A stretch of DNA of 64,000 bases, from NCBI GenBank assembly GCA_964252035.1, contig OZ176200.1; one strand, given 5' to 3'. Shown piece by piece: positions 31,201-53,875 of this stretch. The notes beneath the pieces were generated by a model, which did no database searches, was not told the DNA's origin, and was given only the letters and a program-made list of their open reading frames with translations. The translations under genes and the position numbers were made by a program. Within the stretch, counting starts at the first letter, position 1; each line of letters starts with the position of its first letter. This stretch comes from Podarcis erhardii. Its lineage: Eukaryota.

Positions 31201-34200
31201 TATATTGCAAGGTAGTTGATATTGGCATATTAGGTTTTAATATTTCAATTTATTGAAGAATTCTACTAAAATAACCAAATGTTCTGCTGAGTGTATTCAC
31301 TAAGCAGTAGGTTCCTGAGGTCATTATTTCAGGGGACAGGGGGAGGAGTGGGAGTTAAGCATATCTCCCAAAATTATGGGTCTTGAGGATTCTGTATAAT
31401 TGTGTAGTGTTAGAATGTTCAGTTTTCCACTCATTAGAATACTTATAATAGGAAAGGAGTAGGGATAACACTATAGCCAATTAGTGATTTTACTGAAGAC
31501 CATTCTTGCATAATCCAGTGCTTGTATAGTGTTAGCCAGAATTTCAGACACATTTTACATAATTAGTTAAGAGAATTAGCTCAGTGAGAAGGCCATTCAT
31601 GTACAGTTTTGTAGCTGTTGCCTGCAGTTTTCAGAGGGTAGAACAATTGCTTTGTCTGCAGAAGTTTCCATATTTAATCCCTGGCATCGCCATGTAGGAT
31701 TGGAAAGAGTCTTCTCTGAAGTCCCAGAGAGCTTCTGCCAATCAGTGTAGACTATACTGAACAAGATGTGTCGATCACAGAATCAGAATTGTAAATGTTC
31801 TGACTTGGATTAAGTCAACTTCCAAGTTCCTAGTCATCAAATGATAACCCATTTGTGGTGTTACGTTTGCACATTGGGCTTCCATTAACACATTGAACTC
31901 TGCTCATGCAGCATTGGATACAGCACCGTCTATTTTAGTTGTCACTGTACTAAAGTGTGGGTTAGTCAAATATTCTCCTTATATTCAGCATGGTTTGATT
32001 ATTTTTTATGCTGTCTGTCACATTTTCGTTCTTTTCTCTTGAAGCTTCCTGATTTTGCTTTTCCTTAAATGAGAAAGTTCAATACATTTGTCTCTGATAG
32101 TATGTGATGTTCTAATCAGTTACATTAAAAATGAATATTTTAATATATCTTTTTATATAATATAACATACTGACTATGGCTAAGATGTAAACAACATAGA
32201 CACCAGTTCAGATTTCACCTTGGCTATAAGCTCAGTAACTAGGTAATATTAGGTAAGCCACACTTTTTCAGCCTAAACACCTATCTAGAATCTTTGCGAT
32301 AAAGATCTGTCAAGTAGCTTTATTAGCAAGTTTACTGTGCTAATACATAAAGCATTTTGAACACACTATAAGCACTATATGAATGATAAGTATTACTTGA
32401 ATGCTCAGGCAAAATTTATTTCGCTGAAAGTGAACAATGTAAAATACACTCAAGACATTCTAAGACCATAAATGAAATGTTCTCAGTTCAGTTTGGACAC
32501 ACTGCTATTGTAAAGTGTAATTAAAGTTAAGCATTGATTTAGCATGTTATGCTGCCTGTCCATCTGACTCATAATCAGTGCATGATACAACTATCTCTGT
32601 CAACTCAGCACACAACACTTAAGAGAGCTCTTACAGGTCTCTTGGCCAAGACTGGGAATGCCCAGTTCCAGAGCAGGAAGGTATCTCTCTAGATACCTCA
32701 ACATTTGCCCAAATCAACCCAAAAATCTGTGTGCACATACCAATAAAACCTACCTTTTCTCACATGTATGAGATAAGAGTTCTGATATTTGGGCAAGATG
32801 TTATTGCAATTCAGGGGCATGATGGTTGACATGGGTGTACTTACTGGAAAGCGGGGAGAGGGTTATTTTGTCAGAAAACTGACCTACCCAACTGCTACAG
32901 TGTTGAGCGCTTTTCCTCTTCTGTGATGTCTGACAGGGGTGCCTCCGAGGGCTCACTCAAGGGATTCCTCCGACTCGGTAGATGGCCGAGCCACTCCGAC
33001 AGAGAATGCTGTGCCGCCGCCACGCATTGAGAAGCCTCCTGTGTTGCCTTTCTTCAACCGCCCTCCTTCTGCGCTTCCTCTCATGGGGCTGCCACCTCCA
33101 CCCATACCACCCCCTCCTCTTTCCTCAAGCTTTGGGGTTCCCCCTCCCCCTCCAGGAATCCACTACCAACACCTCATGCCCCCTCCCCCTCGACTTCCTC
33201 CACACCTCACTGTGCCACCTCCTGGGGCCGTGCCACCTGCGCTGCACCTCAACCCAGCCTTCTTCCCCCCACCCAATGCAGCAATGGGGCCCCCGCCAGA
33301 CACCTATAACAAGACCTCTGCAGCATACAACCACAGCAGGTGAGAGCAAGCCCATTCCCGGGAATCTGAGAAGAAAAAAAATCAAAACTAAGCAGTGCAA
33401 AGAACAGTAGCTAAGCCTCTTGTTTAGCAAGGCTGCAGACCTAATTCTCCAAGGGCTTAGTTATTTTGTTTTTATGCAAAGAGTGATGGTTCGACTAGAC
33501 ATGAAACCACCTTCTCGTTGGTGGTAGAAAATGTCTCGTATAGCTCTAGAGCACGACAGCTGACAACTTGGTTCTTAAAGGATGCTACTTAATGTCTGCT
33601 TTGGGGGGGGCAGTACCTGGTCAACCACACATTGCTGTTTTGAAAGGCCTTGAATTGCCATGTCTATGAATAAGGAACTGTGTCATAGTTCTGCTTGAAG
33701 CTGCTTATCCTCTGTGTGTGATGGGTGTGTGTTTGCGTACTACAGCCGGGAACTGGGCCCATTGCCACCTCCTGTCAGTGAAGCTGAATTTGAAGATATC
33801 ATGAACAGGAATCGAGCAATTTCCAGCAGTGCCATTTCCAAAGCTGTGTCTGGTGCCAGTGCAGGTAACCAGAGCTGGCTTTTGCTACCTCTTGCCATTT
33901 CTCACTCCTGGTCTCATTCTTACCATGCCGCCTTTGCTCTGTTATATTGCAGGAGACTACAGCGATGCCATTGAGACCCTGCTCACAGCCATCGCTGTGA
34001 TTAAACAGTCACGTGTCGCAAATGATGAGCGGTGTAGAGTCCTTATCTCTTCACTCAAGGATTGTCTTCATGGCATTGAAGCCAAGTCTTACAGCATGGG
34101 CACCAGCAGCAGCTCCTCCAGGTGAGCTTCAGGCACAGTTATTGCCAAGTCATCCAGCTACTGTCACTCATGTTGCTGATGAGCAAGTCTCAGTTGTGCT

Positions 34201-34477
34201 CTGGTCCCCTTCCTGGGCTTTGTACAGCCAGGTAGGAATAAGTGTTTTTGGTAGGGGAAAGGGTCTTGTTACAGCTTGCCAGTAACTAGATACCTCATTG
34301 TTTTCCAGAAAACGGCACCGGTCTCGGGATAGATCACCCAGTCGGTCTCGTGAGAGCAGCAGGAGGCACCGAGACGTCGTCCATAATGAAGATCGGCATG
34401 AAGACTATTTCCAGGAAAGAAGCCGGGAGCATGAGCGACATAGAGACAGGGACAGAGAAAGAGACCGACATCACTGA
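16229..34477 (+). CDS. CPSF7: Cleavage and polyadenylation specificity factor 7 (CFIm59), complete, 460 aa
   Basis: Coding exons 16229-16282 ([18 protein letters not shown]), 26155-26373, 27286-27389, 28674-28819 (RRM), 32937-33339 (Pro-rich), 33746-33864, 33953-34121, 34309-34477 (RS/RD tail ...DRERDRHH*). All GT-AG, 1383 nt in frame. Confidence 0.97.
17130..17350. mobile_element. Penelope-like remnant with inverted duplication; hammerhead motifs broken
   Basis: Near-identical to 2184-2376; plus-strand motif 17258-17295 has GAAA->AAAA, minus-strand motif lacks CUGA. Confidence 0.7.
17630..17825 (+). mobile_element. L2 LINE ORF2 C-terminal fragment
   Basis: Frameshifted DYC...VGLP...LQ.VQNA.ARLL and [27 protein letters not shown], resembling the L2 motif LHWLPV..RI.FK. 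Confidence 0.65.
18138..18322 (+). mobile_element. Squam3-type tRNA-SINE
   Basis: TCAGTGGCAGAGCAC head; CCAGTCAGTCTAGCAAATACT..TGGTCTGACT body; boundaries approximate. Confidence 0.55.
20783..20975 (-). mobile_element. Squam3-type tRNA-SINE
   Basis: GGAAGCTGCCTTATACTAAATCAGACCAT...CAGCTATGGCCC is the reverse complement of the same family. Confidence 0.6.
23500..23785. mobile_element. Tc1/mariner MITE
   Basis: TA-CAGTGGTGCCTCGC...GCGAGGTACCACTG-TA; internal repeats of TCTTGCG and GCTTAGCG. Confidence 0.85.
24860..25213. mobile_element. Tc1/mariner MITE related to 23500 copy, in a (TA)n run
   Basis: TA-CAGTGGTGCCCCGCAAGACGAA...TTCGTCTTGCGAGGCACCACTG-TA. Confidence 0.85.
29020..29230 (-). mobile_element. 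CR1 RT fragment
   Basis: [15 protein letters not shown]...ILEKVQRGA in the minus frame. Confidence 0.65.
31630..31815 (+). mobile_element. Squam3-type tRNA-SINE
   Basis: TTAATCCCTGGCATC...CCAATCAGTGTAGACTATACTGA; boundaries approximate. Confidence 0.5.
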
Positions 34478-34955
34478 GAGAAGTGAGAGATGTTTCTAGG
34501 GTGCTTTACCTTTCCCATCCCCTCCACCCCTACCCAGTGTATTTTCCTTTCCGAAAAGAGCACCCTGCTCTTCAAGTTGAGTATCATCCCTCTTGTAGAT
34601 GCTGGCTAGGTAAGGTTGATTTCCCTTATGCTCTGGAAGCCTTTCCATGGCATAATCTCACACTTCTCTCCAGTGAGTGTACTGGTCATGCATGGATCTT
34701 AAGCTACCAGGGCAAATACATATTGTCTTGCGTTCTCCATGCAGTATGTTCTGCTAGGCAAGATTTTTCAAAAATAAGGGAGTTGTCTGCTCCCTGATTG
34801 ACTTGCCCTTTGACTACATGCTTGAGCTGTTTATTTTCTAATTTAGTAGATTTTTAGTATATTCAGCTGGGCCCTGAATGACTATGTGTCTCAGGCCAAC
34901 TATGCAACTTTGTTAGGGTACTTTTCCTTATTCCTTGTACTGTGACCGTGGATTG

Positions 34956-35546
34956 CCGTATTTTTCGTTCCATAAGATGAACTTTTTTCTTCCTAAAAAG
35001 TAAGGGGAAATGTCTGTGCGTCTTATGGAGCGAATGTGTAGTCCCTGAAGCTGAATTGCCATGGGGCGAAAAGCAGATCATGCTTTTCCTTTTCTTTTTC
35101 TTTTTTTGAAAGAGGGAAGTGGGTGTTGAAACAAAGCCGCTGATCGGCAAGCGATCAGGAGGGAGATCAGAGATGCTAGCAATAAAGGAGGCTGCCTGGG
35201 ATGGGGGAGGTAAAAGCCCATGGATCCTCAGGATTTTTGCATTGGGTCACCCAAAATTCACCATCAGATCACATAGCATGTCCATGGCTACAGCCTGCAC
35301 CAAAAAAATCATGCACCCACTGTTTCGTTGGGGCCGCAGTGGCGCAAAAACGTGGTTACAAAGCATGGATCCACATGGATTCTCAGGATTTTTGCATTGG
35401 GCTACCCCAAACTCACCATCAAATCACATGTTTGTGGCCACAGCATGAACCACAAAAATCATACATCCACTGTTTCATTCAGAATATTTTTTTTCTTGTT
35501 TTTCTCCTCTAAAAACTAGGTGCATCTTACGGAGCGAAAACTACGG
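34956..35546. mobile_element. Non-autonomous Tc2/Kanga-like DNA transposon in the CPSF7 3'-UTR intron
   Basis: TIRs CCGTATTTTTCGTTCCATAAGA / TCTTACGGAGCGAAAACTACGG-TA; internal ~150-bp degenerate tandem duplication (35218-35480). Confidence 0.65.
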
Positions 35547-36642
35547 TATTTCTGTAGGTTAGAATCAGATGCTTGGTAAATGTGTCAAGGGCCCAGTCTA
35601 TATATTGCAATAAGTCATGGTTACTGTGAACTAGTAGCATGCTAATGCAAACTGCTCAGTAGCTGCCAGTTTGCTGCTGCCCTGCCATGAATGACAGCAA
35701 TAATCTGAACAAGACACAATCCACAAGCCAAAGTTTATTCTTGACTTACTGACTATTGTTAAAGAGAAACAAGCTGTGATTCCAATGTGCGTGTTAATGA
35801 CAAGCCAATCCCATGGCTTATTGCTCCCAACCATGCCATGGGAGAAGTAAAGTGGGAGTGCTTGGGCAGTTTTGTTTTTAAGTTTGTGCACAAAGCTACT
35901 TTTGCCCTTCCCGACTGTATTGATTGTGTCTGAGGCTGTACCTCTGCAAGCATTAAATTCAGATTCAGTCATCATTGGTGTGTTTGATTTATGGAATCCC
36001 TGATGAGCCGAGCTATGAATCACAGACGTAACTATCTCTTTGAAGAGTTTTTACCGTCTCTGTGTTCATGTTTGCTGGTCTTGTTTGCCTCTTTGTAAAG
36101 CAAACCAATAAACCCACCAAAAATTCAACTGACTTATATTACTTTGAATTCTCAGACCTAGCATAAGGGAGAGAAATTGCAAAAAAAAAAAAAAAGAGTT
36201 CAGATCTTTTATTTCAAGAGGGGCATCACAGACTAGTATTGGTAGAATAACTTCTCTAACTTGAAAATTAGCCAATTTTTTCCAATGGCAATCTGCCTTG
36301 GGTGCCCTGGAATAAAAAGTGGAGTAGAAACTACAAAAATAAGTAGAACATAGCCTTGCAATCTCACCACCCACTTTGCTTTATGATTGTGACTAGCACC
36401 TAAGGTGGCGATGAGTCTGACTTGAGAGTAAGTTTGATTCAGTGGGTAAAGTGCTGAGTCTAATCCAGTTCAGCCATGAGCTAAGACAAGCCTGTAGCTT
36501 TGGTTCCCTATTGCATGTGGAAATAACTGTGACTTCCCCACGGAGTTACAGTCCAGGGTTAATGGGCAAAATTCTCAACAAACCTCTTTGAAAGTGCTAT
36601 AGAACTTACCAGCATTTCCAATTTTGTTTTGTCTCTTTCTAG

Positions 36643-38850
36643 GAGCGTGGGAAGCATTCAGTGTTTTTATGGACTCTTATCTCCTCTCCTTAATCAAGAC
36701 TAAAATATGGAGACTTCTCCACCCCCTCCTTCCCACTGCCCTCTGCTCTTTCCGGACCCCTTGGAAGGGACTTTGCCTGCAGAACTCCATCTGGCACACC
36801 ATGGTATTGGGACCTGAGCTCTGCCTGTGTGCTGTCGCTGCTGCTTGATGGAGAAGCACTGAATGACTTGGAGGGTGGGAGGGGTTGGTTGTCTGAGCCA
36901 CCGTGACCAGGGGCCACTTCAATCCATGGATTCTTGGACCCAAAGAGAATGGTGCTTTCCACAGAGGTCTCTTGCCTCTTTCCTTTCCGTGGCTTTTTTA
37001 GGAGCACTGGGGAAGGAGCCCATCCAGCTCGTCTCCTGCGAGAAAAACTGGTGCTTCAGCACAGTATGAGATGTCTGACCCTATTCTCCCCGGAACTCGT
37101 GTCCACGGTCCACACTGCATTGTTTTCTTAGGCATCGAGGCATCCATTCCTCCTTAAATCTGATCCTTTTTCCAAAGCAGCTTCAGTCTCGCCCTCCAGC
37201 ACCGTTGTACACAGCTTAGAAAACAGTATTTCCCTGCTAGGATGGAAGGCAGGCTGGCTGCTTCTTCGGGTCACCCCTCTTCTCCCTTCCTCCTTTAGTT
37301 GCGGGAAAATGTCACCTCCTTCCCACCTGGCTTCTTCTAGAGGGGCCTGCGTTGGTCAACCGGCTCGCAACGTTGAATCTCCCTTAAAAAATAGATCTGG
37401 CTACTGCAGGTCCGCTTTCCACTGATTTGCTAACCATTTTCCTCGCTTTGTTTCATGCAATAGCTGCTCCAGTTGTAACTTCTGATGTAAACCTTTGTTT
37501 CTGGGGCCAGCCCCTCCCAGATTGCCGCCTTCCTTGTTGTAGAGGAAGTGTTGTGAACGGAGACCATAGAATGGAACGGGGCAAAGTCAAGCTGGGGCTA
37601 CCTGGAAGTTACCGAATGCAGCACACCCTAAGCATTTTTAAAATTCTATGTGATGTACTTGTTGAACGTGTTGATTTAAGGTCCAGAGCTTTCCTTGGCC
37701 CCTGCCTCCTTTTAAAAGGAGTTCCTTTTTGGAGTGGTTCACTCATGAGTTTGCTTCAGATAGCACCATACCTCACTGATCTCTGGCATGCCAGTCTAGG
37801 GAGACGATTAGAGACAGTGGGAGGCGTCTCTTCACACCACCATATTTAGCTGTGTTATGTAATCGTAAGTAGGGTTTCTGGAGCCACTCTAGTCACCAGG
37901 CAGCCCTTTGAGACCAGTTGCAGCAAAAACCTGCTTGTTCGGAGCATTAAGGGACAAAAGCACCTGCAGAGCTCTCATCTTTGAGTTGCAACCCTTTGGG
38001 TGTTCATTTTCAGCTTTCATTGCTCCATCCTAGCCTGAGCACCCAGTTACTTAAAATCAAGGTAACACGTTACACCCTGGAATATGCAGTCTCCAGCAAC
38101 TGGGTCTCGGTAGTGAGGCCAAGCATCTGTTGTGTTCACAAACACTTAATGTGATTGTTCAGCTGCATGGTGAAGCCTCCCTTGTAGAAGGACCCTGTTT
38201 TGTCTCACAGAACAATGTTGTGGCCCAAGGTGGAGGGGGTGGTGTCTGGCAAAGGATGTTCTTGTGTGATGTGGCACCTCCTTTTGTACTGTTGATCACA
38301 GAGGTGCTCAGCTCTAAATGTGGTTTTTTAAAAAAATAAAACGGGGAAAGTTGTGTAAGCAATGGAGCGACAACTTAAAATGTAAAATATATTAAAAATT
38401 GATGATTGGAAAAGTTGCTTTTTACATAATGGACATTTTTAGTTTGTTTTGAAATAATGGAAGTAAGAAAAGAAAGAAATGAAACAACAGAAACATAGCC
38501 TTGGTTCCTCTCAACTCACCCACCCCTGTTCTTCGTGATTTGATTTGTTTGTCTTTTTCTGATAGGTTGGAAATTGTGTAATAAACTTGATGATATTGTC
38601 AATCTTTTATACTGCATTGTATGGCTTCTTTTCATTTTGTAACTATTTTGAATGCTGGGTGAGCTGTTTTCTAGAATCTCCACTAAATATGAGCGGGGGG
38701 CAGGGGGGATGGAAAAGAAGATGGATAGATAAGACAGGTGCCATATTTTGGCTGGGTAGTAGCCCTTGTACAACCATGGTGTTATGTACTGCTAAACTAG
38801 TTCCAAAACCACTTTATGTACACATATTAAAATGATTTTTTAAAGCTTCT
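36643..38850 (+). other. CPSF7: CPSF7 terminal non-coding exon (3' UTR)
   Basis: Donor GTGAGA at 34483, 5 nt after the stop; acceptor TTTGTCTCTTTCTAG ending 36642; AATAAA 38580-38585 and ATTAAA 38826-38831. Confidence 0.75.
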
Positions 38851-39429
38851 ATCTCTCAGTCATCTCCATTTAAAGGGGAGTGTCTGGTAGCAAGCCAAGG
38901 AAAGATTTGAGAATTTCTGCCAGTGTGAAATCAGTACACTGAATGAAGATTCAATGTTCAGCATCATTTTAAGTTGCTCCTTTAAAAAATATTTGCTCTG
39001 GAAAACATGAACAGAAATCACAGGTTTCATAAAAAGGGATAAGCATTATGCTGAACAGAGATGGGGAAATGAAGCCACGATGGAAACAGATGAAACTCAA
39101 GCACTTTGAAAGGGGATTGTGCCTTTCATGTGAAATTGAATATTACAGGCAAGGATGCAAGGAAATATAATAGCATATAAGGGCTTTCTGTCTATGGCAG
39201 GAAAAGGTTCAGTTACAAGAATATTGTCCTGATTGCTAGTGGTATTCAGTGAAATGTTTCTGGGGTTCATAGGCTTGCACAGATGGTTTGTGTTTCATCT
39301 TCCTGAAGGTTTGTCATACAAGGGCATTTGCCTGTGACTGGCGGGTGAGGTGGTAGTACTTTCAGAATGCAGCTTGAGTGGTGAACAGCCTGTGGGAGGG
39401 GCTTAATGCTGAGTGGGTGGGTTTACCTG

Positions 39430-39442
39430 GTTGCTAGGTGAT
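39430..39442. promoter_or_regulatory. RFX X-box-like site ~95 bp upstream of the fascin-like ATG
   Basis: GTTGCTAGGTGAT: perfect GTTGCTAGG half-site, same core as the SAXO4 boxes, second half imperfect. Confidence 0.5.
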
Positions 39443-39536
39443 GATTGTGATCTAAGGGACCAAGGATTAATCTCAAGTGAGCCCAGATAACTGGTCTGAT
39501 GAATGGGTACCATTCAAGTCTCTTGTTATTCTCACC

Positions 39537-42500
39537 ATGACATACTCACTAGAATTTGGCCTTGTTAATGCGGCCAACCGGTACCTGACTGCTGAACCTT
39601 TCCGTTTCCAGGTGGCAGCCACAGGCAAGCAACTGAAGCCTCGCCAGTTGTGGGTACTGCAGTTTGTGAGCCCACAGGGAGCTGGGGCAGCTGGCCCAGG
39701 AGAAGGGGCTGGCCAAAAGCTTCACCTGATCAGTGCACTGAAACGCTACTTGGCGGCTGACGCAAATGGAAAAGTCACCTGTGACCAGGACAAACCAGGG
39801 CCTCAGACCTTCTTTCTCTTGCATCAATATCCAGATGGCAAGGTGCTGTCTCTCACCCAAGCACAAGCATCCTATCTCTCAAGTGTAGCTTATGTCCAAT
39901 ATTATCGGGCTGGAATTCTGGACAAAGAGGGTTGGTTGTGGTTGGGTGGGTGAGATGGAGGGCAGAAGGTAGGAAAACAATGCTTAAAGTTGCTTCAGTA
40001 GGGCCTCAAAACTATTCCGCTATTGCCCAAATGTGGGTCTCTTGTTTTGCTTACAAATGTTTTTTTACAATTAAGAGGAAGAAGTGAGGGCAGGATTGCG
40101 CTCGATTTGCAGACTAGTTTGCTGTGGTGAGAAGCAGGGTCTTTTCTTAGTGTGCAAGTTTTTAGATTCTTACGGGTAAGTCCAGGCAGCAGATTCCTGT
40201 AAAGTGCATCAGGAAGAGTGTAAAATGTCCCTGGACTTCCCCCACCCCCATGGTCTCCTTGGAAAGCCAGTCACATGAGCCAAAGCTCTTTGCCCCTGTC
40301 GGCCAAACAGTATGATAGCCAGCCACTATGGGCTGAAGGGGAGAGAATGTGTCTGAATAGCTTATTTGAGTCCCTGTGCCTGGTGTATCCTTCAAGGTGC
40401 CCTAGCCACTTCCCATCCACAACTGGAAACAACTGTTGCACAATGGAACTTAGGTGATCATGGCAACTCCATAAGCCAAAAGGTGTAACATAATTGGTGT
40501 GATGATACCTGAATTTTATTCTGCCGTGTTCTTTGCTCATTGAGAGTGTTCCTGCTTTTCTTGTCTTGGGCAATGTAGTTGACCAGACATCCTTCCCTCC
40601 CTGCAGGTGTCCTTGCAAAATGAACAGTCCAAGCGCTACCTGGGTGGAGCAGAGGATAATGTTACTTGCTTTGCCCAGGCTGCCACCGAAACTGAAAAAT
40701 GGACCCTCCACCTGGCTGTGCACCCCAATGTTGCCATGTACAACCCCAACAGGAAGCGTTATGTGCGGTGTGATGATAAAACTGGGGTGCTGCGCTGTGA
40801 CCGTGACATGCCCTGGGGAGCTGAATCAGTCATCACTATCTACTATGATTTCAGAGGTGGGTGGTGGCATTTTCCTATTTTGTTTTCAATTGATATGTGC
40901 ATTTTTCTCTCTAATACTGTAACACACATCTCCCCCCCCCCTTTGTTGGGGGAGCGTGTTAAAGAAGCAAAACATTCTGCTGTAGGGTTACACACACACA
41001 CACACAGACACACACACAGTAATTCCTGTTGCAGGTGAGGACTTATAGCTACCATACTAACAAGAAAGTTGCTTCTTCTGAACTAAGGATTGTTTAAAGT
41101 TTTCTGTTTTCCTCTCCAACTATGGAGCAGACACCTGGGGTAAGTCTGAACACCTGGAAAGACTTGAGAAATTTGAGAGATGGAGAAAGTTTGTACCAGT
41201 CACAGGCTTTCTCCTCCCACAGTGAGAAAGTTGCTACTTTATTCTACAGATGTTTGTCTGCTTGTGATTTTACCTGTACATGAGGATTTCTAAGTGCTAC
41301 AGGTGGGTGGGGTGGCCTGGGAAGGCAGTAAGTGCTTCTAAGTGGAAGGTCTTAATTCAAAAAGTTTGAGTAACACTGCCTTATTTACACATCTCTATCC
41401 AAAAGCCACCCAAGCACCTTCTAAGATAGTCCTCTGTTATTGATGTGTGAAAAAGTTCAGTTTGAGTCATTTGCATCTCCTCCAATAGGTCTGGAGTCCA
41501 ATGGTGAGAGAAGGCAATTTTCCCCATACATACCAGGTGAATTCAAATTCTGTTTACCCAAGAAGTCACTGTGGCTGGCAGGAATTTTGGTTTCCTTAAC
41601 ATCATTAATTAGCTTGGGTAATTCTTAGAACTACTAATTGCCCTATGCAAGACTTTCTGGTAAGTTAGACACCAGTGCAAACTTTCCAAATAAGACAAGA
41701 AAGGGAATTGTCTGTACAGAGAAGTTTCCAAGTGCAAATCCTCTTTCCTGACCATATTGATGTTGGAGGTTCCCCACTCTCTCTCACACACTTTTAAGTG
41801 AAATTGCACACTAGGCTAAAGAATCTAATACAACCAGTTTTTAAAACACACATGTAGTGTGGATAAAGGTGTGTATTAGTGCAGATGAGAACATTATTTC
41901 AATCCCAATCTCAGCCTGCATGTGCCCATGGCACATCTCACTATACCTGGGTTGGGGCAATGGCCTCTAGCTTTATCAAGCACACACGTAAACCCCCAAA
42001 GTAACTATGCAAGAAAAATAGGGTGTAATCTACGAGGAAACAAATGAAGTGTCATGAAGTGTCAGCACCACCAATGCTGTACAAAGCTGAGACCCAATGA
42101 ACGTCAACTTGCCTGTCAGAACAAAGCACAGGGGGCTGTTTACACACATGTACAAATGATATATGAGATTCTGGGCAAGGGAAATACAATGGGAAATGTT
42201 AAGGGCGAACAGGACTAGGGTACTCTAAAGGGTTGGTGTTTGGAACTGCAGGCAGGGTGGGCCTGTATGGCAATTCTGCAGTGAAACAAGCATCAACTCT
42301 GATGCTACTTTGTAAGACAATTGATTTGGAGATTGTTTTCCAGGACTAAACATCAAACTGCTGTCAACCTCTCATTTCTCTCACCTTTATCTCCAGCAAA
42401 GAAGTATGGATTGAGGAATGGGGCTGGCAAACTGTTGGCTTCCAATGGCTCACTAGTGCCAGATGTTACCCCACAAACGTTGTATTCCCTGGAGGTGCAT

Positions 42501-45500
42501 GGCGGCTTGGTTGCTCTGCGGGATGAGGAGGGAAAGTACTTGACTGGGCGAGAGGGTAGCATGAGAACCGTGAAGATGGACAAACCTGGACGGGAGGAAC
42601 TCTTCAGCATGGAATCCAGCCCTGCCCAGGTCTCTATGCGCTCTTCTTCTACTAACAAGTTCATTTGCTGCAGGCCAGGTAAGTCAGGAGAAAACAGCAC
42701 TATCTATATTGCATTGCACTTTGTGAAGCCTCTGAAGCTGATTGGCTGTTCCTGTCTGATGAGACAGAATGTTTGTGACCATTCCACCTGCTCAGAAAAT
42801 GAGGCACAGTGGTAGTCCACATTCTGCAAGCAATGGGGCAGTTGTCAGTTTGGTTGGGTAAAACTGAGATAAGACTGACTCAGGAGGCAGGGTGAAGGCT
42901 GGGAGGAGTTCTTAGAAGGTAGGTAAGCTTAGATGCTGGGACCTCAGAGGCAAGATGGATGAAGAGAGGGTGCAGAAGTAAGAAGCAGGAAAAGTGCACA
43001 TACAACTGAAGTAGCAAGGATCCAGTAAGATTACGGTCCCTGAAAACCCCCACAGCATTTCTTATTAAAAGTGGTGTGACAGAAGTGCTAGGGAAGCTTG
43101 CACGTGACGTTTTGTGCTCTTAAACCAGCCTGCCTCCAAAGATAAAGATAGGAAGGTCCAAATGATCCTAGGTCAGTTGACACACAGACAATGCCCCCAT
43201 TCTCTGCACGATGTTTTCCTCATTCAATCCACAAAACACTGATTTCAGCCTGCAAGGAGTGGGCAATGGCATATGTAGGAATGCTGACCTAGGGTGTTTC
43301 TTCCCTGCCCCCTGCAGGTGCTGATCTCTATGCCAATGCTATGGCTGTTGGCAACACAGAGATCTTCCAGGTGCTGTTTGATGACACCACAAAGAAGGTC
43401 TGCTTCCGTAGCCACAGCGGCGCATATATGTCCTTGGTGAGTGTGCCTGCCACGCGTTACGAGGAACAGCAGCGATCAGGCAGGACCTAACTATGTTTCC
43501 TAACTACGGAGAAAGACGGCAGCTCGTAGGTGGTAGAGCACCTGCTTTGCATGCAGAAAGCCCCAAGCTTTTTTCAGCCACAGCCACTCATTCCAGTCTT
43601 GTCCCCAACCTCCTTCCGACTATATTCTACAATGGGCAACACTGAGACTAAGGAGGGAGGAAGCTGACAGGCAGTCCCACCCCATGACTGGTTGTGAGAA
43701 TGTGGGGACTGATCAAGGGCAGAGTGAGGATGGTGGGGCAGAGCCCCTTTTGCCCAAGTGGATCAGCCTCCACTAGATACATCTGTGCCCAGATTGTGGT
43801 GCACCAACTTAATCTGGAATTCTTTTAAATGTGAGCAAGGAGGTGAGTGAGCTGCATCCTCGACACTTGGCTGCGAGCATTCACAAAAATTGTGGCCTGG
43901 TTCAAAAAACAAAACAACTTAAGCTTGAAACTTGATGTAGTAGAGGCTTTGCCACCTCAGGTGTTCACCAACTCTCCCCAGATGAAGATATATCTGTGCC
44001 GTGTGTGTATTAATACAGAAAGGCAGGCTGCAAATCAAGAGGATAATAATATAGCAAGCAGGGAACTGATAAAAGGAGGCTTGTTAAATAGCAGTAGATG
44101 GCTCTTGGTCCTGGACTTGTTTGTTAATGTTAGTAAGGACTGTCTCAGTCCTTTTCCAAAACATTTTTGTCAACTTTAGTGTGGGTGGGGGGAGTTACTC
44201 TATTCTACAAAGCAAAGCAGGGCATTATACACAATCCTCCTTGTGGAAAAGTGAAAAATTGTTTTTTGTACACTGAGGATGGAGAACCTGTGGCTCTCGA
44301 GTTGTTGTACTCAAATGCCTATTGTCCTTGATCATTGGCTGGCAGTTATTACTCCAACATATTCAGGGCCTCAGGTTTCTCATCCCTGCCACAGATGAAA
44401 TATGTAAGAGTGCAGTAGGAATGCACAACTTCCTGAACAACCTCTTAAGAGAAAGCTAACTGCTTAAGCCTGGAGGGCTGGAGACATCTTTTTCAGGTCT
44501 GCTATACACTTACCTGGGAGTAAAACTTACTTATAAGTAGAGTTGAAGGTGATCTTCTGGCTGCATTGTTGTTCCTGGTGTGCACATACACTATCTGCTA
44601 TGGACCATGGTCAGAAATTTTACAGATTTTTGTTGTGCTTCAAAACTTATACTGTCTACATCTAACATACCATTTAGAAATCTTAATAGTTTGGCTTCAG
44701 TCTGGGCTATGGTTCACATAGTGCAACTTGAAGTGTGAAGTCAACAAGAAAGTGGCTTTGAATAAAGCCAAGGTCCACCACCATCCCTATCTTGCTGATG
44801 CTAGAAACCCTCCACTTTTGGAGGTAACTACTGCTGGATGCGGGTGGCGCTGTGGGTTAAACCACAGAGCCTAGGACTTGCTGATCAGAAGGTCAGGGGT
44901 TCAAATCCCCGCGATGGGGTGAGCTCCTGTTGCTTGGTCCCTGCTCCTGCCAACCTAGCAGTTCGAAAGCACGTCAAAGTGCAAGTAGGTAAATAGGTAC
45001 CGCTCCGGCGGGAAGGTAAACGGCGTTTCCGTGCGCTGCTCTGGTTCGCCAGAAGCGGCTTAGTCATGCTGGCCACATGACCTGGAAGCTGTATGCCGGC
45101 TCCCTTGGCCAATAAAGCGAGATGAGCACCGCAACCCCAGAGTCTGTCATGACTGGACCTAATGGTCAGGGGTCCCTTTACCCTTTACTGCTGGACTAAC
45201 CTCCCTGGTATTGAGATGCTCATGCATTGCTGTACTCTTGTGTTGCATCACCCACCACAATGGGATTCTCAGTCTTCATGCAGCACCCAATGCCTTCCAC
45301 TGAAAATATATCAACATGGATCTCAGAACGTAGCTGATAAAGGGACTGCAGCAGGAGGTTTCTATCAGACAAAGTAAGCTGAAAGCACAAAAAGCACTTT
45401 CCAGTGAATGCATCCTGTCTTTTGCAGGGTCCTAATGACTGTATTAACAGCAACACTAAACAGGACAGGAATGTCTGGTTCGACATCCAGTACCAAGACC

Positions 45501-47499
45501 AAAAGGTGTGTCTCCGCATAGCAGACAAGCAAGTGTCCATGCGGCCCAATGGACAGCTCCTGGCAATTCCCAAAGCTGCAGGTACAAGTTGGTAGAGAGC
45601 TTCTCTTACAAGCACCAGGGCATCAGGGTGGACAGGGGAAGACAGCTAGGGTGGGAAGAGAGACTGCACACTGCCAGCTGCAAATTAGCTTTAGGTAGTT
45701 CTAGGGGAAAGGAGTGGAAGCGACAGCCTTGCCCCAAGTCCCTAGATAGCCCTCTAGAGGAATAATGTGGGGAAAGTGTATGCACAGAAACCAAGCTGTC
45801 CCTGGATATAAAATTGGAACATGGGGAGCCAACCTTAAGCTCATCCCATGAAATGGCTTTTTAGACACCTCAAGGGCTTCTTGTTGGAAACCAGCAACCA
45901 AAACTTTCATAATCTTGCTCCTGCAAGATGGAATGAGTTCTGTTTACACTCTCTTCCTTACACTTTGGAGTAGCTAACATCACTACAAATACAGCCTAGA
46001 TGAAAGAGAAAAAAACACCCTAAGACTCACTAAAACACTGCCCCTCTGTGCATATAATCCTGGCCCCCAGAACTGCATACCAAGTAGGTTGACACTGCTT
46101 CTGTAATATGATCTGGGAAGCTGTCAGAGAATGAGTTCCAGTTTGGGGAGAACCACCACCAGAAATAGCTGTGCAGTTGTTGTCCATAGTGGTTACTTGA
46201 ATGAACTTTGGGGCAAATGCCACCGACAGTAGAAATCGGGATAAAACCCAAGGGAAGAACAGTATTTGAAGTCCAAGCCATTAAAAGCTTTCTGTGCCAT
46301 AAGCAGCACCTTGAATCAAGTAAGAAAGACTAGAGGGAGACATTGTGAATTCTGGGCCCCTGTTACAACACTCAGCCTGGCTTCTCAGTGTGGGGCGATT
46401 TCTCCTGATCTTTAGCACTGAGGTTGACTTTCCCTGGGGAGCTGATTCCCTCTTGAGAGCAAAAGGAAGGGTGGCAAAATAGTTCTCTTTGAAAGCCAGG
46501 TGCGGCCAATGCGAAAGGTTTCCCTTGTACCTTCAGGGAAGAGTGAAGATTTCCTGCTGGTGCTGGTGAACCGGCCACTGCTTGTCCTGCACAGTGATGC
46601 CGGCTACGTGGGTCTGTGTTCTGACATGAGGAAGTTGGAAGGGAACTGCGTCAGCTATGTTGCCAGCAGCCTGTCGCTCACCGAGGAAGGCTACTACAAC
46701 TTCCAAGTTGGTTAGTATGTTTCCAGGTGGAACTAAGTATATTCCAAGGGGTTGGGGTCTCCTAGTATCTGTGTTGCGAGAGAAACATGACCTACTCGTA
46801 AATGGGAGCTGCCATCAAAGGATTTTTATAAAAACAAGCCTAGTTTATACGTAGCCATAAGAGGGAGCCAAAACTTGCTTTCCCAAACCAAAACAATGCA
46901 AGAGAGCGCATCATCACTATCCCCCCACCCTTGCCATTTGTTTTGCTCCATGACCTCTGGACAATAGTTTCCTAGGCCCAATTGAGGATAAACTACTGTT
47001 CAGGTTGGATGGCCATCTGTCATGGTTGATTTAGCTGTGATTCCTGTGTTTCAGGGCGTTGGACTAGATGACCCCCAGGGTCCCTTCCAACTCTATTATT
47101 CTAGGTGTCGGTCATGTTTTCACTTTATACATGGTTTCTTTCTAAACCATACCTAGTATTGCCATGACAAGCACATCCTAATTACCTGTGATTCTTTTAC
47201 CTTGTAAACATTAGAGAGATCCAAGAGCTGGTCTTGCCACGCCTCTACCTTCCCTGACCCTCACCCTTCCTTCCACTAATTCTGCCACTTGACTTGCAGG
47301 CAGCAAGTACTGGGCTCTGGATAACGATGGACAAATCTTGGTAAACAGTGACCGTCCCAGCAATTTCACCATCCAGTTTGCATCCTCCAGCTGCCTGATC
47401 ATCAAAGCACCCAACAACAAGTTTTTTGTGGCTGAGCAAGGAGGCCGACTATGGGCAGGGGCTTCAGACGCATCTGGAGCAACACTGTTCCATTTCTGA
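39537..47499 (+). CDS. Fascin-family actin-bundling protein (four beta-trefoils), divergent paralog, complete, 494 aa
   Basis: Exons 39537-39842, 40607-40856, 42397-42678, 43318-43436, 45428-45581, 46537-46710, 47300-47499; all GT-AG, phases 0,1,1,0,1,1, 1485 nt with no internal stop. Fascin motifs: FGLVNAANRYLTAE, RYLAAD.NGKVTC, CFAQ...EKWTLHLAVHPNV, RKRY, DRDMPWG, NRPLLVL, KYW. CACCATG start; AATAAA 47526-47531. Confidence 0.92.
44839..45190 (+). mobile_element. Sauria SINE in fascin-like intron 4
   Basis: GCGGGTGGCGCTGTGGGTTAAACC head, GGGGTCCCTTTACCCTTTA tail; TACTGCTGGA at 44829-44838 and 45186-45195 (TSD). Confidence 0.85.
47020..47105 (+). mobile_element. CR1 3' end
   Basis: GTTGGACTAGATGACCCCCAGGGTCCCTTCCAACTCTATTATTCTA. 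Confidence 0.75.
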
Positions 47500-47914
47500 G
47501 AGCATCTGACCTTGCTCTTCCCACCAATAAACTTTTTCTGTGTGGGCTTACTTCATGCTTATCTCAACTGATGCCCAATTGGCCCATGTGTTAGACCTCT
47601 TGGAAATGACCCTTCCTCCGTAGATCCTCCCTCACACAGGGCATACTTGAACTCTAAATGAAAGCTCTGCTACCTACAGCAGACCCAAGCCAGGACCCTT
47701 TCATGTGAATTTCCTTATGCAAAAACTTTCTGTGCCTATGAGGTCCCTTCTGAACTGCCTTCATGCAGCTAGGATGATTTGCAAAGCCTCAGTTATCTTA
47801 AAGATGTGTACCTCTCTTCAGCCCAAGAGGGGCCCCCCATGCTTCTAGGAGCACTGTTGTTCTCCCAGTGTACCAATGTTTGTCTGAAGCTCCACATAGC
47901 TACAGTAGTTTAAA

Positions 47915-48535: not shown

Positions 48536-51500
48536 TCAGTAAGAGTCCAAGCTGCAGAAAATAGAGAGCGAAACATGAGGATCTTAGAAACAGCGACAGC
48601 AAATACCTCGGCCTTCTTACCCAATTTACAGTGGAACAGACTGAACACCTATTCCAAGGATGGGGAACCTGCAGCCCTCCAGATGTTGGAATCCAACTCC
48701 CACCATGGCCAATAGTCGGTGATGATTGAAGTTGTCTAGCAACATCTGGGGAGCCCATGTTCTATTCCATTGATTCCCCTGTTTGAAGAAATAAGCCAAC
48801 CAACATAAATATATGATAAGCCACCTGTGCAATTTAGCATTACATCATTGAGCCTGAATCAATCAGAAAAAGAACGTCAAACTTGCATGTTCTCCCACAA
48901 CAGCCAAGGAGGACTTCAGCAGGATTTTATGTTCTCTATTTAATTCTACTTTTAAAGAATCCTAGCTTAGCATTATGTCTGAACCAGGAATCCTGGTTTA
49001 AAACTCTGGTAAGTGCCATAATAAATCAACTTCACACTATGGGTTATGAATTTGGCTTCTTCAACTGATCAGAGTTACAGTATACCAATTTGCAGAGAGT
49101 ATAACAGAAAGGTTTGCATTCAACACAGCGCTAAGAAGAAAAAATTCTCCTTGTGCAATTGAACATTTTCCCCACCTGCATGCCCCTTAAATCTGCTCTG
49201 GGAATGGCATAGGGCACAGAAGTCCCACTGTACTAATATGAATCCTTGCACTAATGTGGATACTTGGTTGAATATTGTCCAGTCTTTGAGGGACATTAAA
49301 GGCTAAGCTAACACATTTATTACAGCTTAAGCCAGTCCATGAAAACTTATGCCATAACTAATTTGATGCTTTTTAATGTGCCACAGGACTTTTGTTGTTT
49401 TAAACCAGGATTCTTGGTTCCAACATGATGCTAAATGGGGATTTAAAAGTGAAAGGAAATCCTTCCAAGTCCTCCCAGCCATAAAGGAAGAGGATATGGG
49501 GACTCACACACGAGCCTGAAACTTCACTTAGCACTAAACCCAACATTACCAGTCAGTGTCTTAAGAAACAAAGTCTAATCAATGCACATAAAAAATATTT
49601 CCCTAAAATACCATAATGGTAGGCAAGTAAAGTACCTGGAGAAGGCAGCCAGAGTGAGAACACCCAGTAACAGCTCCACAGCATAGAAGAGGAGGAGGAT
49701 GGCATTAAGGATGGCCTCCAGCCGCAGAGCATAAGTCTGCAGCAGCAGATAATAGGCTGCCATCACTGCTGCTGGAAAGGTTAAAGCCAGACTGATAGCA
49801 AGTGGCACTTTCCGTTGACAGAGGTTCCCTTTTGAGCCTGCCATACACAGAAAATATGAAAAAGAAAATGCATAGACCTGTTCAGCATAAAAGCCACAAT
49901 ATTTGGAATCTGAGGGCACAAAATGAATAGTTCTACTTTTCAGGGATCAGTTCTCATTTAACTAAATAAGTTAAAAAATTGTCCAGTAGCACCTTTGAGA
50001 CCAACTAAGTTTGTTCTGGGTATAAGCTTTTGTGTGCATGCACACCTCTTCAGATACACTGAAACAGAAGTCACTAGACCTTTATATAATGGGAGGTGGG
50101 GTGGGGTATTTCTCGGAAGGGTAGTAGGAGATGGGTGATTGGCTCAATGGGTATGGTAAACCTGTTGACGACTGTGAACATTTTTTTAATTTTTTTTAAA
50201 ATATAATTTTTTAAAAAAAATATATTTATTTCAACTGCATCAGACCAACACAGCTATCTACCTGAATCAAGAATCATTTAACTGAGAATAAGGAATGGGA
50301 TTTTGCATTTAACATTTGTACCGTAGTTCATAAGCTAGTCTCAGGTCAGGAAGGACAGTCAGACTGGATGAATGGGATCTCATATTTCCACCCACATAAT
50401 GTTGTCTTGCCTCCTACCTACTCCCGAATTAGGGAATGTACCACAGAGCCCCTTTTTCAGCCTTTGGGCATCATTTCATTGGAGGCACCTATTCCAGTTC
50501 AGCAGAATAATTAGGAAGGCCTGGAATGATGGGAGTGAAGGCACTGTCAGCAATTTACACTCTGCTCAACTACTCTACTCTCAAACACCTTTGCTGTTGG
50601 AGAAGCAGAATTTATCAATGAGTGAACCACAACAACAACAATAATAAATTTTATTCATATCCTGCCCATCTGGCTGGGTTTCCCCAGGAGTCATCTTTTC
50701 AGGTCAAGTGCCATCGAAGATGCTCACAAAATGGCAGGTGAGTGCAATACTCGTAAGAACATTTTTATTGAATACTCACCAAAAAATATCCGGGTCACTT
50801 CAATCCCAAGATAGAGAAAAAGCATAATCAGGTCCAAAGCCAAATTGGCAGAGGGGTAGGGCAACAGGAGTCCTAAGTGGGTGCACAAATGGACATATGC
50901 ATTAAGAGAACAGCAAAGCAACAAACACTGGGACATGGATGGTTCTAAAAAAGGCTGTGAACTCTCAAGCAGCTAGGTGAGAAATAATTACACTATCCAC
51001 TTTGTTCTTTCACTTTCTTCAGGTGAGAGCCACAAGGTAAATGCGTAAAAAAAACCTTCTGCAGGCAACCCAAACACATCATCCCTTCAAAGTCTCACCT
51101 TTATAGACAAATATGAAAATCTCCAGCAGAAAATATGTTGCGTAATACCAGCCATTCAGGAACAGGAGAATCTCCAGAGGGGTGGAGGAGAGCTGGCGAT
51201 CTAGGGGGTGAAACCAGAACATGATTATCTATGGGGTACACATTTTGTGTTCCACTCTCACCTTCTCTCAAAGAGGAACAGTACAAACTTTCATGAGAGA
51301 CTATATAAGGGTTCATGTACAATTCATCTTGTCCCCCTGCTTTCCAGCTGAATCAGAGCCAATGGCAATTCTGGTTTTCCCAGGACTGCCATTTGTTCCA
51401 ATCCATCCCAAGGTGGGTTTTCGGAAATGAGCAGGGCAAAGGGTGTGAGTCAAGCAGAAACTGCTGCTAAGAAGCCAAGCAGCAATGAGAAGGTCTCAGT

Positions 51501-52255
51501 TCTGTTCTCAACTCAGTCAACAGAGACCGGTGCGAGGTGAAGATTGTCAAAATGGAAGCCCTGAGATGACAACAGCCATTAGGAGACGCCAATATTTGTA
51601 CTGGGCTGGACAAGGACAGAAAACACAAGCCCTGTGTGTAGCCACTCTCCATTTCGCCTTTCTTGTATTTGCACTGGACGTTGTGAGCTCAAAATTGGGA
51701 TGCTGCCTCACCAGCTTAGCGTGGAACCTCAGCACACGGTCTAACATACCTCAGGCAAAGGGAAACCAACCAGCAGCAGAGAATAAAAACCCTAACCCAC
51801 CGATCTGAACCCCTTGGAAGGGTCCAAAACCCCGTATTTGGGCAGCTTGATGCTAGGAGAGGGTTGCGAAGGGGCAGCCTCCCGCAGGACGTAGCGCCGA
51901 GTCTACCACCCTCCTCTGGCAGGATGGTTTTTCTGGGGGAGCTCAGCGCGAGGGTGAGCCAAGAGGGGGACCCGGGGGCCACTCTGCCTCCTTCCCCTTA
52001 GCTCCGGCTATTCCTCCCGCCTGGGGAGCGCTTGGCGGGATGCCGTCGGATCCCCGCCGTCGCTGCCGGGCTGCAGCCGGAGCCCGGTTCCCGTCCCTGC
52101 TGCAGGGCTCGGCGTGTCCTGGGCGGCGGGCCGGGCGAGCGGGGTGGGAATGAAGAAGAGCCGAGCCCTCCACGGGACCAGTCGCGGTCACGTGACCTCG
52201 CAGCCCCCAGGGCCCTAGAACGCTGCCGGGACCCCGACTTACTGCGAGGCGCCAT
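48536..52255 (-). CDS. TMEM216: Transmembrane protein 216 (ciliary transition zone, MKS2/JBTS2), complete, 141 aa
   Basis: Exons 52255-52243 (MAPR), 51200-51099 (NRQLSSTPLEILLFLNGWYYATYFLLEIFIFVYK), 50872-50780, 49837-49636 (GSKGNLCQRKVPL...LAAFS), 48551-48536 (SLDSY*). GT-AG, 426 nt; the last exon is the least certain. Confidence 0.93.
49965..50268. mobile_element. Penelope-like remnant in TMEM216 intron 3
   Basis: GTAGCACCTTTGAGACCAACTAAG...GTGTGCATGCACAC..CAGATAC, plus inverted CAGACCAACACAGCTATCTACCTG near 50240-50265. Confidence 0.65.
52187..52196. promoter_or_regulatory. Palindromic E-box/CLEAR-type GTCACGTGAC in TMEM216 intron 1
   Basis: GGTCACGTGACC 52186-52197 within the CpG island. 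Confidence 0.5.
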
Positions 52256-52260
52256 CTTCC

Positions 52261-52274
52261 ATCGCCATGGAAAC
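52261..52274. promoter_or_regulatory. RFX X-box in TMEM216 5' region
   Basis: GTTTCCATGGCGAT on the minus strand, 6 nt upstream of the ATG. Confidence 0.7.
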
Positions 52275-52565
52275 CGCTACGCAGGAAACCCACTTCCGGC
52301 GGGGCTCACGGCACGAAAGCGGGAGAGGGCGGAGTGGCGCGCAGCGTTCGCGGAGGCAGAAAGGTCTGGGTTGGCGAGGCGCGCGCTCGCTCCCTCGCTC
52401 CCAGCACGTTAGACCGAATGGAAGCAGAGCAGAGCCGCTCTATCCCTCGCCTCTTTGTGCCGGAAGACCCGTTAGAAAGGCAAAAAGCTCCATGCGATAC
52501 CGGATATCAGAGCCGCGTCTCTTTGGGGCGGAGGCCCAGATTCCGAGCGGGGACGGCGTCGCCTC

Positions 52566-52579
52566 GTCTCCATGGTAAC
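52566..52579. promoter_or_regulatory. Consensus RFX X-box between TMEM138 and TMEM216
   Basis: GTCTCCATGGTAAC, full 14-bp consensus match. Confidence 0.8.
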
Positions 52580-53875
52580 CCATGAATTCTACCCGCGCTT
52601 CCTCCGCGCGAGTTGTGGAGGCAGGAAATAAACACAAGGGCTCCGTTCTCCCGCCTTCTGACAAGGAGCGACACCTATTTCTTTGCTTGTTATGCAACGG
52701 CCCCGTTTTTCTTCTGCCCTTTCCTCACACGCACATTTTTATTTTAGATTTTACAAGCTTTTTTTCCCGGGAAGCGGGGACAACATACACGCACATCATA
52801 CAAAGCACCTCGGATTGCTCAGTTCACATGGCCCAAATGACACTTAGCTCGTATATATCCGAAAATCCACTCCCAAATCCAACACTTACCAAGTTACCCA
52901 GCATCATCTCCTGCCCTCGAAAGCTTTTTTATTATTCTGTCAAAGGCCCACAGCGTTCCACAGTTAATGCTACTGTTAGGAGTCTTGCCCCACATTTCAG
53001 AGTACAAGATTTCCTGGGTATTGCGCTTTAGGAACAAGCTTCTGTTTTCCCTCCCAGTTTATTTTTTCTGTGAATTTCATTATCTTACCCTAAACCACAC
53101 ACATGCCAGGCATAACATCCATTTGTTTCCTGTATTGAAATGTTGCTAAATTATATGGTTTATTTTTAATATCAATAGCACAACACAGAGAACTGCTGGT
53201 TAATAAATCAAGCCTTGGAATGAAGGAAACCCTTTTACTACCACACATTAGAGGAAAAACAATAAAGCAAGATCACCACGCTTTGGTTTCTGAAAAAGAG
53301 CCAATTTATTTTCTCACCATTTATAAAAATGCAAGTACAAAAGGGGAATCTAACAAGTCAATGAGAGTACATTTGCTCAGGCTGAATACTGCAAAGCCAA
53401 ACCATAGTCTTTATGCCTTGTCACACTGTCAGAGGTACTAGTGAAGGCAGGAATCCTTTTCTGTCACAGGGGAGCTTAGGGCAAGAAAATATTCTCAAGG
53501 AGGAAAATGCAGCATTGCTACTCAGTGGGAGTTGTCAGCCAAATCTGTTTGGCACTTCAGATCGTTCCTCAGTAAGGCTGCAGCCAAATCCAGAGTGCAG
53601 TTTGCTGAACTGAAAGGAGGATTGTGGAGTGCTTGGAGACTGAGAAGCAAACTGTAGCAAGCAGGGTATCCACAAAAGAGCAGTTCCATTGATGGGTAGC
53701 CTAATGTGCATGAATGTAGGAAAGGGATGAAGTCATTTGACCACATGAGATTTAGAACTTGACTGTAGGAGACAAATTGTAGCGGGAGGAGGGGAACTTG
53801 CTGCAAGATATTGGTAAAATCTCTGTGGACATTCTAGCAAGCTGGCCTCTGCTCCAAATGATCCAGAAGCAGCTG

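Follow-up and report, generated by a model that had tools for sequence, protein, structure and literature searches.

Does the interval between CPSF7 and TMEM216, which is not known to hold a fascin in mammals, carry a working fascin gene in lizards and, if so, which fascin is it? The question is raised by a stretch of 64,000 nucleotides from Podarcis erhardii (contig OZ176200.1 of assembly GCA_964252035.1), the whole of which is hereafter called the window. A preliminary description of this DNA had proposed a seven-exon fascin gene at positions 39537-47499 and had interpreted it as a separate, ancient paralogue. Vertebrate fascins are generally counted as three in reviews (PMC7698196, PMC9174856, PMC4996939), and a paralogon study covers only FSCN1 and FSCN2 (PMC3560075). 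On the evidence given below, we are highly confident that the window contains a functional gene of the fascin family that encodes a four-beta-trefoil protein of about 55 kDa, and that it belongs to a gnathostome-wide lineage apart from FSCN1 and FSCN2, located at CPSF7-TMEM216. FSCNX is used here as a working name for this lineage.

The gene consists of seven coding exons on the plus strand that are joined by six GT-AG introns with pyrimidine-rich acceptors. When the exons were spliced again, they yielded 1485 nucleotides, that is, 494 codons followed by TGA and without any internal stop, so that the coordinates, the length, and the terminal residues of the open reading frame (ORF) reported earlier were correct. 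Exon 1 (39537-39842; 306 nucleotides, 102 codons) begins in the start context ACCATGA, with A at -3, and ends in a phase 0 donor (AAG/gtgctg); it has the same 306 nucleotides in Lacerta agilis, the python Liasis, and the skink Tiliqua and matches the Pfam Fascin model (PF06268) with an E value of 8e-10. Exon 2 (40607-40856) measures 250 nucleotides, as in all tetrapod orthologues mapped, and holds the motifs CFAQ, HPNV, RKRY, and DRDMPWG, which had already been named for this protein. Exon 3 (42397-42678; donor CAG/gtaagt) has 282 nucleotides from sawfish to lizard and matches the Fascin model at 3.6e-9. It is followed by exon 4 (43318-43436, 119 nucleotides), exon 5 (45428-45581, 154 nucleotides), exon 6 (46537-46710; donor TTG/gttagt), whose 174 nucleotides recur in every orthologue mapped, and exon 7 (47300-47499, 200 nucleotides), which contains the stop codon at 47497-47499. 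A putative polyadenylation signal, AATAAA at 47526-47531 on the same strand, lies 27 nucleotides past the stop; like the favorable start context, it had been pointed out before and is present in the sequence. Exons 1-3 score above the Pfam threshold and exons 4 and 7 give weak matches, while the full-length orthologues P0154 and P0159 contain the four Fascin stretches that are expected of the family (171 bits, the cut-off being 23). From frog to lizard the exon sizes are nearly invariant (306/250/282/119/154-157/174/200 nucleotides), and their recurrence in L. agilis, Liasis, Tiliqua, turtle, alligator, and frog puts the gene model far beyond chance.

An open frame may be fortuitous, as in a decaying or unexpressed pseudogene. 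To compare the genes, exact coding sequences were rebuilt from the genomic loci of seven species, and the ratio of nonsynonymous to synonymous substitutions (dN/dS) was estimated by the method of Nei and Gojobori (NG86). The ratio is 0.03 between the window and L. agilis (dS 0.09), 0.09 between the window and Liasis, 0.15 between the window and Tiliqua, 0.12 between Liasis and Tiliqua, and 0.32 between turtle and alligator. The values among squamates are thus 0.03-0.15, and the ORF is intact in about 20 squamates as well as in turtles, alligator, frogs, and fishes. Moreover, when the gene is compared with snake and skink DNA by blastn, only the seven exons, one cassette exon (described below), and about 180 nucleotides upstream of the ATG can be aligned, and the splice sites are retained. 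The upstream block (39357-39536, plus strand), in which conservation with Liasis begins 180 nucleotides 5' of the ATG, is a putative core promoter or 5' untranslated region (UTR). Since both the dN/dS values and the restriction of conservation to exons exclude a pseudogene, that explanation is considered highly improbable, and as judged from these sequence comparisons, the fascin gene of the window is under purifying selection and functional.

The next question is how far the lineage extends. Homologues were sought with exon 1 against protein representatives and in word-indexed searches with a turtle protein, an FSCNX profile, and a frog protein. The exon 1 search showed a sharp drop from close matches at 137 bits to ordinary fascins at 79 bits. 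Orthologues of FSCNX are found in about 20 squamates (79-96% identity), in turtles (61%), in the alligator (57%), in the archaic frogs Ascaphus (48%) and Discoglossus, in coelacanth and sturgeon, and in many sharks and rays as well as the elephant shark (40-44%). The emphasis that had been laid on retention in squamates must thus be given up, as the same gene at the same locus is also present in chondrichthyans, sturgeon, coelacanth, frogs, turtles, and alligator. By contrast, the description of the gene as ancient, diverged, and annotated as 'fascin-like' at most holds true: nearly all entries in RefSeq and UniProt are named 'fascin-like', 'fascin', or 'Fascin-like domain-containing protein'. 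A mammalian member, which had been predicted to be missing, did not turn up in the searches that returned mammalian FSCN1. Likewise, FSCNX-type proteins from birds, teleosts, salamanders, caecilians, and neobatrachian frogs were not recovered, although FSCN1 or FSCN2 of these groups was; this absence can be taken as negative evidence for loss of FSCNX, limited by the word-index method.

The relationship to the known paralogues was examined in two maximum likelihood (ML) trees (IQ-TREE, LG+C20+F+G4 with posterior mean site frequencies), each of 51 rows taken from fascins other than FSCN3. In both trees FSCNX forms one clade (support 100/100) whose stem is very long, at 1.16-1.19 changes per site, and the order inside the clade is that of the species tree, with chondrichthyans followed by sturgeon, coelacanth, and frogs, then by turtles with alligator, and then by squamates. 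FSCN1 and FSCN2 constitute separate clades, each supported at 99-100 and each containing both fishes and tetrapods; the FSCN2 clade, for example, includes ray, teleosts, newt, turtle, crocodile, and chicken. FSCNX is excluded from both, which bears out the earlier placement of the gene outside FSCN1 and FSCN2. Compared with the fascins of invertebrates (Drosophila singed, sea urchin), with which FSCNX shares the four-domain fold at 28-29% identity and which represent the single-gene ancestors of the family, FSCNX branches within the vertebrates, after the fascins of tunicates and amphioxus. Based on these trees, it is a firm conclusion that FSCNX is neither FSCN1 nor FSCN2 and that it is of vertebrate age.

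It might still be argued that FSCNX derives from FSCN1 or FSCN2, either as an orthologue that has diverged or as a copy made recently, since in pairwise comparison it matches FSCN1 (37%) and FSCN2 (34%) best and since both ML trees place it as sister to FSCN1 (92/87 and 95/88). Such an origin is, however, hard to reconcile with the monophyly of all three groups, with fishes and tetrapods in each. In addition, L. agilis carries FSCN1 (P0257) on a chromosome record other than that of FSCNX, and the two genes differ in intron content. The FSCN1 gene of L. agilis has five coding exons of which the first is large (826/157/125/168/203 nucleotides), compared with seven coding exons in FSCNX; that is, four introns in FSCN1 versus six in tetrapod FSCNX (alignment columns 192/275/371/411/465/523). 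Three of the FSCN1 introns are common to both genes in position and phase, the fourth differs, and within the region of the large first exon of FSCN1, FSCNX has one extra intron in all members mapped or two in tetrapods. Taken together, a derivation from FSCN1 or FSCN2 appears exceedingly unlikely.

With respect to these introns, the sawfish (Pristis pectinata, L002:10001-10526) lacks intron 1 only, exons 1 and 2 being joined in a single exon of 526 nucleotides. Intron 1 would have been gained by bony vertebrates, among which it was seen here in tetrapods only, or else lost by chondrichthyans.

The position of the gene between CPSF7 and TMEM216 is supported by the domains and PDB matches in the window as well as by the orthologous loci, in agreement with what had been stated before. 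Upstream, the 3' part of CPSF7 occupies 28636-38856 on the plus strand, with an RRM exon at 28636-28902, an RSLD exon at 33829-34125 (Pfam RSLD_CPSF6), and a probable 3' UTR block at 36572-38856. The RRM exon matches CPSF7 in the PDB (3n9u) with an E value of 1.4e-21 versus 5e-4 for CPSF6. An SDHAF2 exon lies further upstream of CPSF7. Downstream, an exon of TMEM216 is found on the minus strand at 49575-49919 (Transmemb_17 family, PF09799, E 3.6e-15), and in loci L001 and L005-L009 the FSCNX orthologues likewise have TMEM216 as their neighbor. The order CPSF7(+), FSCNX(+), TMEM216(-), and TMEM138(-) is shared by L. agilis, Liasis, Tiliqua, and the turtle Lepidochelys. In the alligator the order is FSCNX, TMEM216, TMEM138, and CYB561; Ascaphus has FSCNX next to TMEM216, and the sawfish has CPSF7 next to FSCNX. 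Because the order of neighbors is kept, fully or partly, from sawfish to lizard, the gene arrangement indicates that the CPSF7-TMEM216 locus of FSCNX is ancestral for jawed vertebrates. With regard to the linkage of FSCN1 to ACTB, no actin gene is present among the flanking genes of the window (SDHAF2/CPSF7 and TMEM216); in L. agilis, the 10 kb around FSCN1 contain no other gene.

To what extent FSCNX resembles fascin-1 as a protein was addressed with the AlphaFold (AF2) model of the Varanus orthologue, which is 89% identical to the window protein. The model is an all-beta, four-trefoil structure of high quality (predicted local distance difference test, pLDDT, 91.6; predicted template modeling score, pTM, 0.89), in which the sole disordered stretch is a Gly/Ala-rich loop at residues 48-56. 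In Foldseek comparisons it superimposes on human fascin-1 with a template modeling (TM) score of 0.89 at 37% identity, on about 24 fascin-1 chains from crystal and cryo-electron microscopy structures in the PDB with TM scores of 0.84-0.90, and on the AFDB models of FSCN1, FSCN2, and FSCN3 with TM scores of 0.89. FSCN2, the fascin of retina and hair cells, is alike in architecture (TM 0.90) at 33-34% identity. Fascin-1 (Q16658; PDB 3LLP, 1DFC, and 3P53) and FSCNX have in common a length of about 490 residues, four beta-trefoil Fascin domains, the motifs CFAQ, RKRY, and DRDxPWG, and the equivalents of R149-K150-R151, K353, K358, and R383. They differ in clade, locus, two or three extra introns in FSCNX, the replacement of Ser39 and Ser274, and a cassette exon in a loop of trefoil 2 that is found in FSCNX.

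Residues were numbered according to FSCN1 of Antechinus, with offsets checked by motifs. P0019, a mammal-type FSCN1 from a JGI metagenome or metatranscriptome, is unsuitable as reference for the C-terminal third: its identity to Antechinus FSCN1 ends at residue 322, and the C-terminal part is unrelated sequence, so that the protein is frameshifted or chimeric. The FSCNX lineage keeps K22 (as R), E27, F29, R110, R149-K150-R151, K247, K353, K358 (as R), R383, and K464, and all its members have lost R389 (H or Q instead), R398, K399, K460, and K471. The latter five are basic residues of the N/C-terminal actin-binding site of fascin-1. Ser39 is replaced by Gln in squamates (Q-L-K-P-R versus S-L-K-K-K of FSCN1 and FSCN2), by Val in turtle and alligator, and by Ile in some sharks, with Ser found in other sharks, Ascaphus, and sturgeon, and Ser274 is replaced by Cys in FSCNX of tetrapods and sturgeon. 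We take Ser39 to be the off-switch of fascin-1 that is operated by protein kinase C (PKC), a regulatory rather than fold-defining residue.

From homology and fold, FSCNX would most likely bind and cross-link actin filaments like fascin-1. Because Ser39 and Ser274 are replaced and R389, R398, K399, K460, and K471 are lost, its regulation and one of its actin-binding surfaces probably differ from those of fascin-1: PKC would be unable to switch FSCNX off at position 39, and the first actin-binding surface would be altered.

Several points weigh against the reading of FSCNX as a functional fascin lineage of its own. Its Pfam Fascin score of 171 bits is less than half of the 377 bits of FSCN1. Approximately unbiased (AU) tests reject neither a clade of FSCN1 and FSCN2 without FSCNX (p 0.35) nor one of FSCN1, FSCN2, and the lamprey fascins without FSCNX (p 0.20), and the deep placement of FSCNX in the trees is unstable. 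The bundling activity is not assured, since half of the basic residues implicated in the actin binding of fascin-1 are changed. Finally, expression is presumed from the RefSeq isoform models of relatives and from the Callorhinchus FSCNX protein, which probably derives from a cDNA.

If FSCNX is neither FSCN1 nor FSCN2, the remaining question is whether it corresponds to FSCN3, the testis fascin. Both proteins have the same fold and are highly diverged on long branches. They are unlike in locus, and FSCNX evolves slowly within squamates. In mammals, the FSCN3 gene is reported to lie at ARF5-PAX4 (PMC3563606, PMC3759438). In the window and in seven other species, FSCNX is found at CPSF7-TMEM216 and thus away from the ARF5-PAX4 locus that characterizes FSCN3. 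In the Foldseek comparison of AF2 models, FSCN3 (Q9NQT6, Q9QXW4) has an identity of 25-26% with FSCNX and of 26-27% with lizard FSCN1. FSCN3 keeps Ser at the position of Ser274. Human FSCN3 has seven exons, the number of coding exons in tetrapod FSCNX, and human FSCN1 and FSCN2 have five.

These data can be accommodated if FSCNX and FSCN3 are distinct ancient genes, possibly ohnologues of the 2R whole-genome duplications, with losses of a reciprocal type: FSCNX would have disappeared from mammals, from birds and teleosts, and from the majority of amphibians; FSCN3 would have been lost or never kept outside the mammals. The constant locus from sawfish to lizard, which is unlike ARF5-PAX4, speaks for such a true fourth paralogue, as does the fact that FSCN3 is no closer to FSCNX than to FSCN1 when measured by the same method; if FSCN3 were nested in amniote FSCNX, it should share the long stem of about 1.2 changes per site and sit clearly nearer to FSCNX. 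The names in UniProt fit as well, where FSCN1 and FSCN2 entries have projected names, whereas FSCNX is only called 'Fascin-like domain-containing protein'. On the other hand, if FSCN3 is confined to mammals, at least five independent losses of FSCN3 are needed in addition to those of FSCNX. Identities of about 25% are, moreover, near saturation, and FSCN3 is less distant from FSCNX than the outgroups predict. The outgroups are nearer to FSCN1 than to FSCNX by 6-12 points (singed 41% versus 29%; sea urchin 34% versus 28%), while the gap of FSCN3 amounts to about one point (26.5% to FSCN1 versus 25.5% to FSCNX), which hints at some history shared by FSCN3 and FSCNX. On balance, we see an even chance that FSCNX is a fourth paralogue.

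Alternatively, FSCNX may be orthologous (pro-orthologous) to FSCN3 and represent it outside the mammals. In this scenario, the gene moved from CPSF7-TMEM216 to ARF5-PAX4 in a stem mammal, or was copied there with loss of the original, and subsequently underwent the very fast evolution of a testis gene. The small excess of similarity between FSCN3 and FSCNX over the outgroup expectation would find an explanation here, as would the number of seven exons that human FSCN3 has in common with tetrapod FSCNX, and the ranges of the two genes appear complementary. The FSCNX member of Callorhinchus is labeled 'fascin-3' in nr. Furthermore, FSCN3 and ARF5 adjoin PAX4 in mammals, an arrangement that is absent in the fishes examined (PMC3563606) and that hints at a restriction of FSCN3 to mammals. 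Such possibly complementary ranges would be equally compatible with reciprocal loss and with orthology plus relocation. The difference in synteny argues against orthology, and so does the identity between FSCN3 and FSCNX, which is below that of Drosophila singed to FSCNX. A further argument against it is the Cys of tetrapod and sturgeon FSCNX at position 274, where FSCN3 has Ser. We regard this orthology as a serious possibility that nevertheless falls somewhat short of being even.

Candidates for FSCN3 were also considered. An identifiable FSCN3 protein was not among the matches of the exon 1, turtle, profile, or frog searches, all of which were aimed at relatives of FSCNX. P0022, P0017, P0020, P0332, P0063, and P0114, which had been considered as FSCN3 because of their length or N-terminal offset, turned out to be bird FSCN1 or unnamed fascins that are not FSCN3-like. 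A second FSCNX copy of chondrichthyans was likewise rejected as FSCN3 orthologue, as it is a single-exon retrocopy that nests with the multi-exon copy of the same group.

This retrocopy is found in cartilaginous fishes on another chromosome than the multi-exon gene and consists of one intronless ORF of 1464 nucleotides that encodes 487 residues (L003:10001-11464 in Pristis pectinata and L004:10001-11464 in Amblyraja radiata). It is common to sharks and rays and 56% identical to the multi-exon copy. Its dN/dS of 0.18 between sawfish and skate indicates that the retrocopy is functional.

What follows for the history of the family can be put as a broader proposal, namely that the ancestral jawed vertebrates possessed a fourth fascin beside CPSF7, which has persisted for over 400 million years in cartilaginous fishes (where a retrocopy was fixed as well), sturgeon, coelacanth, archaic frogs, and non-avian reptiles, which disappeared in separate events from mammals, birds, and teleosts and from the majority of amphibians, and which acts as a differently regulated bundler without the Ser39 switch and with a remodeled site 1. 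We hold this proposal to be as likely true as false. If it is true, the count of three vertebrate fascins is a mammal-centered undercount. A conserved extra lineage would rewrite the family history in either case, since it would represent a fourth ancient paralogue or slow-evolving non-mammalian counterparts of FSCN3 at another locus; the latter would provide a handle on the ancestral function of FSCN3, which has hitherto been an orphan-like, fast-evolving testis gene. FSCNX can also be seen as a natural experiment, that is, a fascin without the Ser39 switch and without part of actin-binding site 1, and with a cassette exon in squamates. In practical terms the importance is modest, as genes that are kept in reptiles and sharks and lost in mammals are common and as annotation already lists the gene as 'fascin-like'. 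A literature search for 'FSCN4' returned no paper, and no description of a CPSF7-linked fascin lineage was found in the literature, although annotation pipelines already predict the gene. Overall, the preliminary description thus stands with regard to an ancient fascin separate from FSCN1 and FSCN2, its locus, and its naming, has an even chance with regard to a fourth type, and falls with regard to a retention mainly in squamates.

The seven-exon model given there is sound, too, but it overlooked a conserved alternative cassette exon of 48 nucleotides in intron 2 (41489-41536, plus strand). This exon encodes GLESNGERRQFSPYIP, is flanked by AG and GT, and keeps phase 1, so that the gene yields isoforms of 494 residues without and 510 residues with the exon. 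The RefSeq protein P0159 of L. agilis (510 residues) differs from the window protein by a 16-residue insert and three substitutions, and the insert is encoded in the window at 41489-41536 with one further residue differing there. Homologous inserts of 16-19 residues are present in proteins of Python, the colubrid Erythrolamprus, and the gecko Eublepharis. In genomic DNA the block is kept in Liasis (82%), which has an intact exon of 57 nucleotides, and in Tiliqua (76%); no matching block was aligned by blastn in the turtle or alligator loci. Given the inserts in snake and gecko proteins and the conserved block in Liasis and Tiliqua, the comparison identifies 41489-41536 as an alternative cassette exon of several squamate lineages. 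On the AlphaFold model, the site of the insert is a loop of trefoil 2.

Some orthologue models also differ at the N terminus. The alligator model (582 residues; L005:10001-10570) has an extension of about 85 residues from a first exon of 570 nucleotides, and the olive ridley model (513 residues; L006:10001-10033) begins in an extra exon of 33 nucleotides. As squamate, frog, and shark proteins share one start methionine, these are probably differences of annotation and not real N termini.

Other features of the window concern its noncoding parts. The block at 36572-38856, 2.3 kb in length, follows the last coding exon of CPSF7 on its 3' side. Python and skink DNA match it at 73-77% identity, parts are retained in turtle and alligator, and it is probably a long conserved 3' UTR of CPSF7. 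Only about 0.7 kb separate its end from the fascin ATG, and the fascin promoter must therefore be very compact or overlap the block. Two GC-rich islands, at 14001-16300 (GC 0.56) and 51900-52700 (GC 0.51) versus about 0.43 elsewhere, contain long spurious ORFs on both strands and are probably CpG-island promoters, the former of SDHAF2 and CPSF7 in divergent orientation and the latter of TMEM216 or TMEM138. No tRNA was called in the window by ARAGORN. Lastly, two spurious ORFs on the minus strand, at 2692-3048 and at 44885-45112 within fascin intron 4, have the peptide motif RKRRLPSR in common; they seem to be two copies of a single interspersed repeat, which may be a short interspersed nuclear element (SINE).

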